Below, one piece after another: positions 1-6,862 of a stretch of 6,862 bases of DNA. The stretch is from Vitrella brassicaformis CCMP3155. Lineage: Eukaryota > Protista > Chromerida. A program made the position numbers and the translations under genes. Under the pieces are notes generated by a model. It had not been told where the DNA came from, ran no database searches, and was given only the letters and a program-made list of their open reading frames with translations. The first letter of the stretch is position 1; every line of letters starts with the position of its first letter. The stretch covers positions 1-6,862 of the forward strand of contig CDMY01000994.1 of NCBI GenBank assembly GCA_001179505.1, written 5' to 3'.

Positions 1-20
1 GTCACAGCCTAGGCGAGTAC
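1..20 (+). repeat. Terminal direct repeat, left copy
   Basis: gtcacagcctaggcgagtac is identical to 6843-6862. Confidence 0.99.
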
Positions 21-660
21 GTGGCGGCGACCGTTGCTGGCGTCATGTCGCTGGAGGACGGGCTGCGTCTGGTCGCTGAACGGGCACGTATCATGCATGG
101 GAGCGACCCGAGAGACGGAGTCATGGCCGCCTGTCGGCTGAGCCCTGCAGAAGTGGAGAAGGCCATTGAGAGACTGCCACTTGGTGAGAGGAGTGTGTCC
201 GTTGCGGCAGTCAACGGCCCCAAGAGTGTCGTTCTGTCGGGTGCTCGAGTGCAAGTGGAGGAGCTTCTGAATAGCCTCGGTGCTGGCAGCCAATACAAGC
301 TGCTTCCCGTTTCTCACGCCTTCCACTCCCCACTGATGGCTGGCGCCGTCCCGCAGTTCAAGCAGGTCTTACAGACCGTTGCCCTTCATCAACCGAGGAT
401 CCCCCTCGTCTCCAACGTCACCGGACAGCTCGTCGCACAAGGCCACCAGGCGCAAGAGGAAGGCGCCAGCCGGACGGACGTGACGGATGTCGAGTATTGG
501 GCGCAACACATTACTCTGCCCGTCAGGTTCCTTGATGGCGTCCAAACAATCATCCACAAAGCCGGCGCGCGCGTCCTCATCGAAGTCGGGCCAAAGCCAA
601 TACTCGTCAACATGGCCAAGCAGATCGTTCGCGAGGACGCGCAAGGAGTGGACCTCCAGT
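3..660 (+). other. Acyltransferase domain, C-terminal half, malonyl-CoA type (end approximate)
   Basis: HSLGEY (3-20), downstream conserved Arg in VAERARIM, AAVNGP, VSHAFHS (HAFH 315-326), YW..H...PVRF, EVGP (582-593). Confidence 0.95.
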
Positions 661-3600
661 GGCTACCTGCTATCGACCCGGGCAGGACAAACGAGGATGT
701 CATCGCTCTGGCCGTCAAGCAGGCAGCGACCTGTGAGGCGGGTGCGCATCAGTGGAGTCGGCGCTCTTTTCCGTGGGCCGATATCCGCCATCCTCTACTT
801 CAGAACCGCACCGATGACGGAGACCACGTACGATACGAGGGCATTCTTCGTGACGAGGTTGCGACCCTTGTGCAGGACCACGTCGTTGTTGGGAATGCTA
901 TAATGCCTGGCGCTGGGTTCCTCGACATAATGGCCGCAGCAGCGGCGGCTGCGGACGAGGGGGCCTCTGTTTCTTCGTCCAAGTCGCAAGATTCGTCTAT
1001 GGTGCAAATGGAAGACGTCATCTTCGAACGCCCACTTAGGGTTTCCACGAGCGCTCCCCCTTCGGTTCGCATTCAGGTCGAGAGGACCGCAGCGAGCGGC
1101 TCAAGCCATCGGCTGGAGACTGTTGGGATCCTGTCAAGGAGCCAGGACGAGCAATCTTTCATGTCTGTCAGTACAGCCCGCGTGACCAGCATCAATTCTT
1201 CGCCCCCTGATGCCTCGGCCACTGGAGGGGACCTGGAAAGTGTCAAGAACCGATGCACACGCCACGTTGATCTGACCTCGTTCTACCGCCAGTTTAGCGA
1301 GTGGGGCTTCAGCGGCGGGCCCCGCTTCAGGACCATGGGTCATCTCATGCTAGGCGATTCGGAAGCTGTTGCTTACCTGCAACTGACGGCACCTATCCTG
1401 CCTTTCGAGAGAGGGTTCCGCGTCCATCCTGCCCTTCTCGATGGAGCGTTTCAAAGTGCATTCGTCGTGCTGGAAATAGTGGAAGCAGGTGCAGACAACG
1501 GTCAGCAGAAGACGACCCAAGCGAAGTCGACTTTTGTGCCTGCCGGGGCAGACAAGGTGTCTTTCGGGCGGTGCAGTGCGTCTGACAAGCTGTGCAGTCA
1601 CGTCCGGCTCGTCAGGCGGGACGACACGGGAGCGATCATCGACGTGGCGCTGTATGACAGCGGAGGTCAGGTGATTGTGGCGATCAAGCATCTCCATCTG
1701 CGGCCGATCCATGCTACATCCATCGCTGAGATCCCGAAGGAGCTCCTTTGGCAGCTGGATTGGCAGACTGGCAGCGACGGCTCGACAACGCTCGACAAGC
1801 TGACTGGCACCGGCGAGAGAGAGGCATCGTCCGTCCATCTGCGGTGCCTCTTGTGTGGCTTGGCGCCGAAGCTCAAGGCGAAATTGGAAGGCTGTGGAGC
1901 AGAGGAGCGGGCCGCTCTCGGCCTGAAGACGGGGTCAAAAATGCTGGCTTGCGATGAGCTACCCGCCGGTCGGGCACTGGAGCTGCTCTTGGCAGACGAG
2001 GTCGAGGGGGCGAAGGGCAAGGGTCCTCGGTATCTCTGGGATGTCATTCTGTACCTGGGCGGGCTGTCAGGGCGGCAGAACGCGAGTGAAGTCGACGTGC
2101 TCAACGAGGCTCTCTGTCTGGCACAAGCCATGCTAAGCCTGGGTCGAAGAGTGCACCAAAACGATCCCCCTCCAATCTGGCTCGTCACGTCTGGCGTCAT
2201 GCAGCCAGCATACGAGCAGGACAGATCACTTGGAGACCTCGACGTGATGGCGCATGCCGGTTTGTGGGGCTTTGCGAAGACCGCTCGGCTGGAGCTGGAG
2301 GCGAACATTGGCAGGAGGATCCAGCTTGGCTGCATCGACGTGGCTGTCGCCCCTCAAGTGAGCGCCTCGTTCCTTGCCTCGCTCCTGACCACAGTGCGAA
2401 CGGAGCGAGAGAAGCCGCTGAATGCTTATGAGAGTGAAATTGTAATGCGCTCCGCTGTCCAAGACCACGAAGGGAAGAGAGATCGACCGGTGAACCTTCT
2501 GTATTCACGCCTCAAGAAGTCGGCACTGCAGGTGCGGGGCGCCGTTGAGCTGTTTTTGCCTCGTCGCGGTGCTCTCAGCAACCTGAAGCTTCGTCCGCTG
2601 GCTGAAGCCTCTCGCATGGTCCCATCAGCTGGCTGTGTGGAGATTCGCGTCCGCGCGGTAGGACTGGATTTCCGTGACGTGCTGAACGTGATGGGTTTGT
2701 ATCCTGGGGACCCTGGTCCGCCTGGCGGCGATTGCTCGGGGACGGTCGTACGGGTTGGAGCTGGCGTGACGCATCTCGGAGTGGGCAATGACATCTACGG
2801 TGTCGCACCAGGGTGTCTGCGGACGTATGCGACCACAGACGCCCGCTGGATGGCCGTCATACCGGCTACCGTTTCGTTCGAGCAAGCCGCGGCCCTGCCA
2901 TCTGTGTTCGTCACCGTCGAGGTCGCTTTCAGGGAGCTTGCGCAAGTCAAGAGAGGGGAGAACGTGCTCGTTCACGTGGCGACCGGAGGGGTGGGCTTAG
3001 CGGCACTTCGATACTGCCAGCATGTGGGCGCCACCGTCTATGCGACGGCCGGCAGTCAGGCGGAGAAGGACTATTTGCGCGAGACGTGCGGCATTGAGTA
3101 TGTGACCACCTCGCGCGACGCTGAGCGGTTCAAAGAGGACATGCTGTCTTTCTTGGAGAGGGGGAAGACGAGGATCGATGTGGTCCTCAACTCGCTGATC
3201 GACGACTACATTCCCTTCTCGCTGGATCTCGTGGCAACCAACGGCCGTTTCATGGAGCTGGGCAAGCGCGGCACCTGGACTAAGGACAGGGTCGCACATA
3301 AGCGGCCCGATGTCATATATGAAGTCATTGCCGTGGACCATATGATGGAGGAGTCGCCCGAGTGGTTCGGCTCGATGCTAGATCGCATCCGACATCTCGT
3401 GGAGCAAGGCCAGATCCACAGCATACCCCTGCATGTGTTCGACATTGACAGCCCAGAGGCAGCCAGCAATGGCGTCGCTGGTTTCCAGTTCCTGCAGCGA
3501 GCGCAGCACATCGGCAAAGTCGTTCTTCAGATTCCGAGCGCAATCGCGGCACGTAGGACCAGCGGGGCCGAGGACATCAGCGGGGCACGTAGGACCGACG

Positions 3601-3959
3601 GTCGGCAGGGCAGCTACGTCATCACGGGCGGTGTCGGGGGACTGGGACTGGTTGTAGCTGAGTGGCTGGTCCACGAGGGGGCCAAAGACGTGGTGCTCGT
3701 GTCGCGGCGTGGCCAGCCGTCGAGGGAGCTTGCGGCGACGGCTCTGTGGCAGAGGCTGACGGACTTGACCGGCGATAACGGCGGAGAGTCAGTCATCCAC
3801 TGTGTGGCAGCTGACGTCTCAACATGGGCAGGCTGCGGCAGCGTGTTTGAACAAGTGGGCCGTCCAGTCGCGGGCATCTTCCACGCTGCCGGTGTACTCG
3901 AAGACGCGGCACTGGCCAAGCAAACCAGGCAGAGCATCGAACGAGTTTACAGGCCGAAG
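3..3959 (+). CDS. Exon A (1319 codons): AT C-half, DH, pseudoKR, ER, KR N-part
   Basis: Frame is open from position 3 (HSLGEY then the track ORF from 21, whose GTG is an internal Val). PKS similarity stops abruptly after ...YRPK at 3959. Confidence 0.95.
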
Positions 3960-6862
3960 GTAGGGAAAGCACACAGCCAGCCTCTCTCAACGTTTCCTGA
4001 TTCAAAGTGCTCTTTCTTGCTTGGCCTCAGGTAATGGGGGCGTGGCACCTTCACGAGCACTGCGCACGTGAAGGTCTTGCCCTCAGTCACCTGGTCTTCT
4101 TCTCGTCGGCCGCGTCCATGTTGGGCAACATCGGGCAGAGCAATTATGCCGCGGCCAATGCTTGCCTGGACGCGCTGACCTTGTACCGTCGTTCGCGTGG
4201 TCAGTGCGCTGTGAGCATCCAGTGGGGTCCGTGGCTGGAGCAAGGCATGGCCGCCCAGCTGAAGCAGCATTTCGACACAGTGGGCGTCCGAGGGATCTCC
4301 AACGAGCTGGGGCTCCGAGTTCTTGGCGACGTCATGAGAGCCGCCACGACAGGCAATTCCAGCCGTGCCGTCAGTGTTGTGGGCTGCCAGTCGCTTAAGT
4401 GGAAGACCTTCCTCCAAACCTACGAGGCGCACCCACCATCGTTCCTGCAGGACGTCATCCCCGCCGACAAGACCACGATAGAGAGCGGAGGGAACGGTCA
4501 GATCAATCATGCCCTCCTCAAGATGGATGCAAGCACGCTCAAGGATCACGTGCGCAAGAAAGTCCTAGAGAAGGCGCGACAGGTGCTCGGTGGGAATGAA
4601 GACAGCACTCCGCCGCTCGATGCACCGCTGCGGGAGTCCGGCATCGATTCACTTGGCGCGGTGGAGTTCAGAAACGGCCTCGCAGCGGAACTGGACGTCA
4701 AACTTTCAGCAACCACGCTCTTCGATTATCCGACGCTTAACGGTATCATTGGATTCATCGTGCAGCAGATCCAAATCAAGACTGGCCAGGAGCAACCGGG
4801 CCACCAGCCGAGCACAATGATGCCGGTCAGCGTGTCTGTCAAGGGGCGTGATGCGCTGACTACGAGGATCGGCGTGTACGGCGTATCGTGTCGGTTTCCG
4901 GGCCGCATCGACAGTCTGGCGTCGCTGTGGTCGTTCGTCATGGGCCAGCAGGACGCCGTGTGTGACACTCCCGCCGACCGATGGTATGTTGGCGACTTTG
5001 TGAGGTCCGCCAGCTCTCTAGACGAGAGCCAGCGGGCGGCGTGCCTCCAGGCCGGGTACATTGTGGATGGGGTGGAGTACTTTGACAACGCCTTCTTTGG
5101 CCTGTCGGCCGCCGAGGCCACGGCCATGGACCCTCAGCAGCGCATCATGCTCGAGGTCGCTCACGAGGCCTTCCTCGACGCCGGACACAGCCGCGAGCAG
5201 CTACTCGGCCAGACCGTCGGCGTCGTCATCGCCGGCAGCTCATATGACTGGCTCACCCTCGGGCGAGAGGGCACAACCAGCACGGCGACGGCCGACAACA
5301 AGAGCACGACCAAGACCAACAGCGACCTCAGCAGCAGCTACGCCGGAGTGGGGAGCGCTGTGTCGATTCTGTCGAACCGCATCTCGTATGTGTACGGTCT
5401 TCGGGGCAACAGCATGACGATCGACACGGCATGCTCGTCGTCGCTCGTGGCGCTGGACGCTGGGGCGTCCTGGATTCGCACTGGCCAGTGCGAGACGGTC
5501 CTGGTAGGCGGCGTGCAGCTGATGCTCTCGCCTCTGACCTTCGTCCACTGCTCGAAGGCCGGCATGATCTCGCCTGACTGCCGCAGTAAGACGTTCGACA
5601 CGAGTGCGAACGGCTATGTGCGCGGCGAGGGTGCGGGCGCCGTGGTCCTGGAGCGGCAGGGGGCCGGCGATGGCGGCGATGATGAGGCCATGAGTGTTTC
5701 TCCTTGGTTGGGCGAGGAGGGCAAGGACGGCCTCGCGAGGGGTTTGGAGGAGGATGTCTCGAGCCGCAGGGGAGGGACAAGGAGGAGGGAGCCTTTGGCT
5801 GTGGTGCTGTCGAGCTGTGTGAATCACGTCGGGCGGAGTGCGTCGCTGACGGCGCCATCTGGGAGTGCGCAGGCTGAGCTGCTCGGGCGCGCCCTGGAAA
5901 TCGCCGGTCTGCGGCCTCATGAGGTGTGCTTCTTGGAGACGCACGGCACGGGCACGTCTCTTGGCGATCCGATTGAGGTGGGGGCCATCCAGCGCGTCTA
6001 CGGAGGGCACGAGCACGACCCAGCGGCAATAGGGGAGAGCAGGCAGCGTCGCCCATTGGTGCTGGGTGCTGTCAAGACCAATCTCGGCCACCTCGAGGCA
6101 GCGGCAGGCATGGCGGGACTGCTCAAGACCATCGCTGTCCTGCAGCACCAGATCTGCCCCCCCAACCTCCACTTGCGCACTCTCAACCCCTTCATTGACG
6201 TCGGCGACGCCACTGAAGAACAGCACAAGCACGACAAACCAGAAGCACCATACGCCACACTCAACTGTGTCTTCCCCACGGAGCCCATCTCTCTCAAGCC
6301 CACACCAACACACACAACCATTGCAGCACCACGCGGCCAGGCGGCAGAGGACGACGACGGCCACACCGGCCATCATGACGACGGCCACAACGCCGCGCTG
6401 ATTGGCGCTGTCAGCTCGTTTGGCTTTGGTGGATCCAACGCACACGTGATCCTACAGTGCAAGCCGAACCAAGGCCGTCAAGCGATTGAAGGCGTCCACC
6501 GGGCAGACCAGGGGGCTTGTCACCACCGGGAGAGGAAGGTGGCTCTCATGTTCACCGGTCAGGGCAGCCAGTATGTCTATATGGGGCGGGAGCTGTACGA
6601 GAGCGACAGCGTGTTCCGGGAGGCCATCGACAAGTGCGCGGCGTTGCTCGATCCGCATCTGTCGTCGCAGCAAGAGGGCGTCTCACTGGTGGAGCTGCTT
6701 TACCCCTCCACTTCATCCGCGGAGGAACGAATGGCTCGGCTCATCGACGAGACGCGCTTCTGTCAGCCCGTCTTGTTTGCCGTTGAGTACGCCCTGTACA
6801 CGTCGCTGTCTGCCCGGGGCGTGGTTGCCGACGTGGTCATGGGTCACAGCCTAGGCGAGTAC
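3..6862 (+). CDS. Multimodular cis-AT type I polyketide/fatty acid synthase, partial at both ends; join(3..3959,4031..6862); AT(C)-DH-pseudoKR-ER-KR-ACP-KS-AT(N)
   Basis: I hand-translated 4031-6862 and found no stop; it joins the track ORF across a GT-AG intron and restores the KR motif RPK|VMGAWHLH. Hallmark motifs occur in canonical order: GHSLG, HAFH, HxxxGxxxxP, GGVG, TGGxGGLG, YAAAN, GIDSL, DTACSSS, HGTGT, GH, GQGSQ. Confidence 0.97.
789..1709 (+). other. Dehydratase domain (boundaries approximate)
   Basis: HPLL (789), HVVVGNAIMP matching HxxxGxxxxP (879-908), HPALLDGAFQ matching DxxxQ (Asp 1440-1442). Confidence 0.93.
1740..2520 (+). other. KR structural (pseudo-KR) subdomain / DH-ER interdomain region (boundaries approximate)
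   Basis: LWQLDW, IWLVTSG, AGLWGFAKTARLE, CIDV, ESEIVMR and YSRL resemble the usual pseudo-KR elements in the expected position. Confidence 0.8.
2535..3530 (+). other. Enoylreductase domain (boundaries approximate)
   Basis: GALSNL, VRAVGLDFRDVL, G.DCSGTVVRVG, LVHVATGGVGLAA NADPH motif (HVATGGVG 2973-2996), VVLNSL, GRFMELGK, QHIGKVVL (to about 3527). Confidence 0.94.
3548..3601 (+). repeat. Three imperfect tandem 18-nt units in the ER-KR linker
   Basis: ggcacgtaggaccagcgg / ggccgaggacatcagcgg / ggcacgtaggaccgacgg, encoding ARRTSG-AEDISG-ARRTDG. Confidence 0.75.
3612..4260 (+). other. Ketoreductase catalytic domain, B-type, split by the intron (end approximate)
   Basis: YVITGGVGGLG (GGVGGLG 3627-3647), HAAGVLED (LED 3897-3905, LDD-like), Lys 3957-3959, FFSSAAS, GQSNYAAAN (Tyr 4145-4147, Asn 4157-4159), SIQWGPW. 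Confidence 0.95.
3960..4030 (+). other. Spliceosomal intron, 71 nt, phase 0, GT-AG
   Basis: Donor AAG|GTAGGG, branch-like CTGAT (3997-4001), pyrimidine-rich tctttcttgcttggcct and acceptor CTCAG|. Removal restores PKVMGAWHLH; retention shifts the frame and gives TAA at 4032-4034. Confidence 0.93.
4031..6862 (+). CDS. Exon B (944 codons, open at the 3' end): KR C-part, ACP, KS, AT N-half
   Basis: Hand translation begins VMGAWHLHEHC and ends DVVMGHSLGEY with no stop. It is absent from the ORF track, probably because it runs off the window. Confidence 0.96.
4540..4765 (+). other. Acyl carrier protein domain (boundaries approximate)
   Basis: PLRESGIDSLGAVEFRNGL with phosphopantetheine Ser at 4649-4651, followed by LSATTLFDYPTL. 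Confidence 0.95.
4865..6457 (+). other. Ketosynthase domain with intact Cys-His-His triad
   Basis: IGVYGVSCRFPG, FDNAFFG, MDPQQR, DTACSSS (5423-5443; Cys 5432-5434), GYVRGEG, ETHGTGT (His 5942-5944), KTNLGHLE (His 6089-6091), SSFGFGGSNAHVIL. Confidence 0.97.
6536..6862 (+). other. Acyltransferase domain, N-terminal half, up to the active-site Ser
   Basis: KVALMFTGQGSQY..MGRELY, VFREAID.C, FCQPVLFAVEYAL, VVMGHSLGEY (GHSLG 6842-6856). Confidence 0.96.
6843..6862 (+). repeat. Terminal direct repeat, right copy
   Basis: gtcacagcctaggcgagtac is identical to 1-20 and encodes (G)HSLGEY in the same codon phase. Confidence 0.99.

Follow-up and report, generated by a model that had tools for sequence, protein, structure and literature searches.

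Self-closure of a one-module polyketide synthase scaffold from Vitrella brassicaformis very probably reflects an assembly loop in a linear megasynthase gene

What does a scaffold represent that ends where it begins? The question is raised by the stretch of DNA analyzed here (the window), 6,862 nt that make up the entire scaffold C994 of the Vitrella brassicaformis CCMP3155 assembly. The window encodes one complete, fully reducing module of a type I polyketide synthase (PKS) or fatty acid synthase (FAS) and closes on itself, in frame, within the acyltransferase (AT) domain. Read literally, it could be a circular molecule templating an endless module, an array of identical modules merged into one, or an ordinary piece of a longer gene. 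As set out below, the window is very probably linear nuclear DNA of a multimodule type I PKS/FAS gene, and its self-closure a repeat loop that the assembly failed to resolve. The evidence comes chiefly from a second scaffold, C772, on which the supposed junction sequence lies between different neighbors.

The two ends of the window are an exact repeat of 20 nt (positions 1 to 20 and 6843 to 6862, plus strand) whose codons supply part of GHSLGEY, the serine motif at the AT active site. This repeat at the AT active site, reported in the original prediction, was confirmed directly. It is the sole long exact direct repeat inside the window, and an end-to-end match of this length has a chance expectation of about 4^-20. 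The repeat that matters, however, is one of 972 nt, and it is visible only by comparison with C772: positions 101 to 1072 of that scaffold are 100% identical to window positions 6581 to 6842 followed by 1 to 710, straight through the supposed junction. This longer repeat, here called R, is coextensive with the AT as defined by Pfam (profile position 3 at exon-2 residue 840, profile position 300 at exon-1 residue 230). The ends of C994 jointly span R once plus 20 nt, with R positions 263 to 972 on the left (window 1 to 710) and 1 to 282 on the right (window 6581 to 6862), which is the geometry expected of an assembly walk that closes on itself.

Outside R, the two scaffolds part company on both sides. 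Upstream, C772:1-100 and window 6478 to 6580 share about 95% identity, with four base differences and a 3-nt in-frame indel. Downstream, the first mismatch falls at window position 711, mismatches are dense from there, and beyond position ~740 the sequences are unrelated. A search for the junction sequence, which the prediction had proposed, therefore did find it, but within linear C772:101-1072 and with different flanks on either side, as is predicted by several identical ATs in one gene family and not by a junction private to a circle. The closure of the C994 unit is accordingly not the only place where the junction exists; rather, both ends of the scaffold fall within a longer exact repeat, found elsewhere with other neighbors. 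Genome-wide, the exact 20-mer occurs at three sites only, namely, both ends of C994 and C772:363-382, the copies in other ATs of the genome differing by one or two bases. The flanks on C772 uphold the prediction's view that the window is linear DNA between two AT copies, whereas the shared 20-mer that it took for the extent of the repeat gives way to an exact match of 972 nt.

Closure in frame is uninformative about topology. Frame 3 of the window is free of stops from position 3 to 3959 and again from 4031 to 6862, on either side of a 71-nt GT-AG intron (plus strand, 3960 to 4030; GT at 3960, AG at 4029 to 4030) that lies within the ketoreductase (KR) domain. The intron is real, because the Pfam KR profile continues seamlessly across the splice, with profile positions 1 to 112 in exon 1 and 113 to 179 in exon 2, and because the deposited gene model, P0121, splices at the identical 3960-4030 junction. 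A frame switch at the equivalent KR position is also present on C772. Once spliced, the circularized unit of 6842 nt loses 71 nt to give 6771 nt, or 3 × 2257 codons, without a stop. The prediction had arrived at the same figures, and the reading frames, the KR profile, and the P0121 junction bear them out. It had also argued that in-frame closure would be automatic for linear DNA, correctly so, since both copies of the repeat stand in one reading frame.

The sequence held in common by the C994 and C772 modules probably extends well beyond the AT. C772:7355-7504 is 98% identical to window 4798 to 4947 (three differences in 150 nt), after which C772 enters a gap of 300 N. The similarity begins abruptly in the linker between the acyl carrier protein (ACP) domain and the ketosynthase (KS), C772 showing none upstream of window position ~4784. 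This sharp start, together with the sharp end just past the AT, points to a shared unit, KS plus AT, of some 2.8 kb (window 4784 to 6842 plus 1 to 710). Of this unit, C772 covers 150 nt at the 5′ end and 1072 nt at the 3′ end, the middle 1.5 kb of the KS being without a counterpart where C772 is gapped or ends. The window's KS is the only assembled KS whose near-identical start and end fragments occur on C772 (95 to 98%), and genome-wide no other KS is more than about 75% identical to it. Measured against what is expected of a homogenized PKS, i.e., nucleotide identity of about 98% or more between functionally equivalent domains of modules that differ in domain content, in blocks that stop at domain borders, the AT scores 100% over 972 nt and the start of the KS 98% over 150 nt, with the middle of the KS unassembled on C772. 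The comparison is between a module with dehydratase (DH), enoylreductase (ER), and KR domains and modules with KR only, and the edges of identity fall in the ACP-KS and post-AT linkers.

C772 shows what the assembly did with such modules. Its plus-strand gene reads, in order, an AT, some 480 residues, and a KR; a gap; a KR; a gap; a KR (interrupted by an intron at the position seen in the window's KR), the C-terminal half of a KR, an ACP, and the start of a KS; a gap; and the C-terminal half of a KR, an ACP, and a stop. The scaffold has four gaps of 300 N, three of which (at 3423, 5101, and 7505) separate near-identical copies of one PKS segment. Three copies of the KR region (2070 to 3422, 3723 to 5072, and 5401 to 6745) are 96.7 to 98.2% identical to one another, two copies of the KR C-terminal/ACP region (6478 to 7093 and 7805 to 8420) are 97.6% identical, and each repeated copy adjoins a 300-N gap. 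There is no assembled KS on the plus strand of C772. At least three near-identical KR-only modules (AT-KR-ACP) are stacked on this scaffold in the assembly without their KS and mostly without their AT. The minus strand of C772, at positions 1208 to 5544 of the segment C772:10001-20000, carries a second, convergent gene that starts with an AMP-binding (FAAL-like) domain, followed by an ACP and a KS; this is apparently the loading end of a further PKS, set opposite the plus-strand gene's 3′ end.

In the explanation that we favor, the window carries one fully reducing module (DH-ER-KR-ACP) and the following module's KS, with nucleotide-identical copies of the AT on either flank. The AT copies, and probably the ~2.8-kb KS-AT unit as a whole, would have been kept 98 to 100% identical among modules whose reductive loops differ. 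Likely causes are a recent duplication or gene conversion, the breakpoints lying in the linkers between ACP and KS and after the AT. That gene conversion is the homogenizing agent, and that the C994 copies are physically linked in one gene with C772, is what we infer. An exact repeat of 972 nt is beyond what libraries of 550 bp and 1 kb can reliably cross; the assembly walk would leave the module, re-enter the same AT, and meet its own start, producing overlapping ends that close in frame. Taken together, the linear readings, be it with a single pass or in tandem, command high confidence. Within them, a DH-ER-KR part that is present once is the somewhat likelier state, and one present in two or more collapsed tandem copies retains a lesser though appreciable probability.

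The explanation fits the known behavior of repeat-induced loop contigs in de Bruijn assembly with scaffolding, which likewise show an exact overlap of the ends, one period of the repeat, and the repeat in a second contig with other flanks; as in such contigs, the graph does not fix how many copies the loop stands for, being identical for one pass, several passes, or a separate circle. For the sequences CDMY01000001-1064 (1064 scaffolds, 72,700,666 bp), Illumina reads corrected with SGA were assembled by Velvet (k=75); scaffolding by SSPACE with the 550-bp and 1-kb libraries, gap filling by GapFiller and IMAGE, correction by ICORN, breaking by REAPR, and rescaffolding came next (PMC4501334). 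The overlap of 20 nt in C994 differs from the 74 nt that k=75 predicts. The original prediction had read the 20-mer as a k−1 overlap at k=21, which can be set aside in view of the documented k (PMC4501334) and of the fact that the 20-mer is not exact in any further AT of the genome.

Several points weigh against a simple loop in a linear gene. The 20-nt overlap fits no documented parameter of the pipeline and is not the k−1 overlap, 74 nt, of the Velvet step. The cut falls on the codons of GHSLGEY, the most conserved motif of the AT, for which we estimate a P value of ~0.04 if R had been cut at random. The identity of R between C994 and C772 might in part be a consensus artifact of the same reads having been used twice, in which case the true copies would be slightly different. 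In a heterozygous alga, C772:1-100 might be allelic to window 6478 to 6580 and not paralogous, and C772 would then lie directly downstream of C994. The linkage of C994 and C772 is, finally, deduced from sequence. As to the behavior of the programs, SSPACE merges neighbors that overlap by at least 15 nt, and gaps of a fixed 300 N are typical of the IMAGE scaffold writer.

Three other explanations have to be set beside the loop. The one closest to it is a collapsed tandem array, in which two or more head-to-tail copies of the whole 6.8-kb module, intron included, were merged by the assembler. It would leave the same assembly graph as a single loop, near-identical modules do stand in tandem on C772, and the scaffolder left C994 and C772 unjoined; moreover, the closest homologues outside Vitrella are coccidian fully reducing FAS/PKS modules on module-sized contigs of 5.9 to 6.5 kb, one of which closes exactly. 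The repeated modules of C772, however, were assembled separately at a divergence of only 2 to 3%, whereas a single version of window 711 to 4783 was assembled, so that any extra copies would need to be ~100% identical over 4 kb. Genome-wide, this part has no counterpart above about 85% identity, and its best long match, on C561, is at 71%. In addition, R has neighbors other than itself, C772:1-100 and C772:1073 onward. On balance, we regard the array as possible but rather improbable, and the more specific picture of a run of at least two virtually identical 6.8-kb fully reducing modules within a megasynthase that also has at least three near-identical KR-only modules as doubtful. If that picture were true, every current model would fall short of the real Vitrella gene severalfold, and eukaryotes would have in it a counterpart of the homogenized PKSs of the mycolactone type. 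The prediction's two linear models, single pass and tandem, were right in kind, in that both called for a megasynthase larger than the one shown, if not in detail.

It is also conceivable, if very unlikely, that the scaffold is a chimera of noncontiguous pieces, e.g., this ACP joined to a KS-AT of the C772 type, with ends that are not real neighbors. The KS-AT is a multicopy repeat, the assembly lacks the KS copies of the C772 type, and some steps of the pipeline fill gaps greedily; but the start of the KS and the KS-AT linker of the window carry variants of their own with respect to C772 (3 in 150 nt and 5 in 100 nt, respectively), which argues for a distinct KS copy that truly follows this ACP, and neither the frame nor any motif is disrupted anywhere. 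An extrachromosomal circle of 6842 bp, excised by recombination between neighboring ATs and coding for an endless open reading frame, is scarcely credible. The loop topology is compatible with it, and its one point of support, the closure in frame, would arise from any repeat that lies within one reading frame. For this last of the models in the original prediction, no positive evidence was obtained: the junction sequence sits in linear C772 between different flanks, the unit consists only of PKS coding sequence and one intron, with no start codon context, promoter, or origin, and a like signature recurs in an unrelated Eimeria assembly.

That the loop is a product of the assembly of near-identical modules is consistent with what is seen in other sequences. 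As a control, the starting 20-mers of four other Vitrella PKS scaffolds (C561, C731, C900, and C1007) were searched genome-wide. The 20-mer C731:1-20 has eight exact occurrences and C900:1-20 four, at KS starts and other PKS sites, the two remaining ones being unique; two of the four scaffolds examined, like C994, break inside exact intermodule repeats. A general 20-nt end-to-end overlap between scaffolds was considered and rejected, as none of the four 20-mers lies exactly at the end of another scaffold, the nearest being at C1039:34-53. The closest relatives outside Vitrella lie, in short-read assemblies of other alveolates, on contigs of 6504 nt (Eimeria necatrix), 6485 nt (E. maxima), 6243 nt (Cyclospora), and 5890 nt (E. 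acervulina). They were compared as proteins, the E. maxima homologue being P0123 and the others P0122, P0124, and P0125. In P0123 (EMWEY_00055660, 1992 amino acids [aa]), the first 88 residues are the same as the last 88, so that its contig is likewise a single self-closing FAS/PKS module, and the E. necatrix and Cyclospora proteins start and end near the same point of a domain. Self-closing or module-length contigs hence recur in this enzyme family when the modules are near identical.

In mechanism, the closest known system would be the mycolactone PKS locus, by analogy of the identity pattern. In MlsA1, MlsA2, and MlsB, encoded by the pMUM plasmids of Mycobacterium ulcerans, domains of the same function are 98.5 to 100% identical in nucleotide sequence between modules, the two types of AT being 100% and the KSs >99% identical; the blocks of identity end at domain borders, a pattern ascribed to recombination-mediated domain replacement (PMC2569948). 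The Vitrella modules resemble them in their AT (100% over 972 nt), KS start (98%), and KR regions (96.7 to 98.2%) and in the sharp edges in the linkers. They differ in that the mycolactone genes are bacterial, plasmid borne, intron free, and fully sequenced, whereas the Vitrella gene is a nuclear one, partly assembled, whose KR contains a spliceosomal intron.

By family, the window belongs with the FAS-I-like/PKS-I enzymes of apicomplexans and chromerids, such as Cryptosporidium CpFAS1/CpPKS1, the Toxoplasma FAS, the Eimeria PKSs, and the Vitrella and Chromera enzymes of one to five modules. The Eimeria and Cyclospora modules, its best matches outside Vitrella, have the same KS-AT-DH-ER-KR-ACP content and are 35 to 39% identical to it. 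The FAS-I-like and PKS-I enzymes of chromerids and apicomplexans have been cataloged by Woo et al. (PMC4501334) and Tomcala et al. (PMC7464705), in both cases from gene models as assembled and without a description of near-identical modules.

Giant algal PKS genes that were hidden by assembly or annotation are exemplified by the PKZILLA genes of Prymnesium parvum. Like them, the Vitrella gene is a eukaryotic algal modular PKS whose size is underestimated by standard assemblies and models; the window module differs in having a cis-AT architecture. About five modules in all can be inferred for the Vitrella gene, and nothing in the present data speaks for one of PKZILLA size.

The circle-like closure of C994 should not be taken as biology. 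What it marks is a spot where the Vitrella assembly and its gene models, i.e., the 2233-aa fragment on C994 and the gapped models on C772, underrepresent a repetitive megasynthase. At least 58 KS matches occur in the genome, many of them at scaffold ends or on small scaffolds, and PKS genes are therefore a weak spot of this assembly. Since near-identical modules collapse or break, the module counts and domain inventories of Vitrella, and probably those of Eimeria too, are lower bounds. Inferences about chain length or product are premature on a short-read assembly of this locus and call for long reads first. The biological point that emerges is a modest one, namely, that a chromerid PKS probably keeps KS-AT units 98 to 100% identical in modules whose reductive loops differ, a feature already familiar from the mycolactone synthases of bacteria.

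The deposited model for the window, P0121 (2233 aa, window 93 to 6862), is a gene fragment and not a whole gene: its first Met is internal, 30 residues into the AT fragment of the window, and its 3′ end runs off scaffold C994. A protein of 2233 aa, Vbra_23180.t1, has been tabulated under "Other KSs" (PMC7464705). Being equal in length to P0121, it may be the same protein. With the exons searched separately, the closest proteins were Vitrella paralogues, followed by PKS/FAS proteins of Eimeria, Cyclospora, and gregarines. In these exon-wise searches, identity above 56% was found only to the window's own model, with no independent near-identical sequence from another strain or assembly.

The domain order in the window is AT (C-terminal half)-DH-ER-KR-ACP-KS-AT (N-terminal half), with all catalytic motifs intact. 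Everything that was looked for in a fully reducing modular type I PKS or FAS-I-like module was found, i.e., a KS, an AT, the reductive loop, and an ACP, and the single complete KS-AT-DH-ER-KR-ACP set noted in the prediction is supported throughout by Pfam profiles and motifs. All features are on the plus strand. The AT is split over the window ends, Pfam Acyl_transf_1 profile positions 90 to 300 matching residues 1 to 230 of exon 1 and positions 3 to 95 matching residues 840 to 944 of exon 2. Its C-terminal half (1 to 710) has no differences from C772:363-1072 and contains HAFH at nt 315, by which, on established knowledge of AT motifs, the domain presumably takes malonyl-CoA. The N-terminal half (6581 to 6862), identical to C772:101-382, ends in GHSLGEY, with the serine motif GHSLG at nt 6842.

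The module-specific part (711 to 4783), delimited by Pfam matches and motifs, comprises the post-AT linker and the DH, ER, KR, and ACP domains. The DH (~789 to 1715; Pfam PS-DH) has its HxxxGxxxxP motif as HVVVGNAIMP at 879, and the ER (~2631 to 3527; Pfam ADH_N and ADH_zinc_N) has GGVG, for its NADPH site, at 2985. The KR (Pfam KR) lies in two exons (3609 to 3959 and 4031 to 4237), with GVGGLG at 3630 for the Rossmann fold and YAAAN at 4145 for the YxxxN motif, and the ACP (4559 to 4759; Pfam PP-binding) carries the DSL serine in GIDS at 4640.

The remaining segment (4784 to 6580) holds the end of the ACP-KS linker, the KS (4862 to 6175), and the KS-AT linker. The KS matches Pfam ketoacyl-synt (E=1e−68) and Ketoacyl-synt_C (E=8e−35) and has the active-site Cys and both His residues (TACSS at 5426, HGTGT at 5942, and NLGH at 6080). 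Two in-frame insertions, both atypical for a KS, were observed in this segment. One, at 5660 to 5795, is rich in Gly, Asp, Glu, and Arg and adds ~35 to 45 residues between the N- and C-terminal subdomains. The other, at ~6250 to 6400, is rich in Thr, His, and Asp and lies ahead of the final GFGGSNAH motif. The two may be genuine loops or introns left unspliced, and both coincide with a shift in GC and AT skew.

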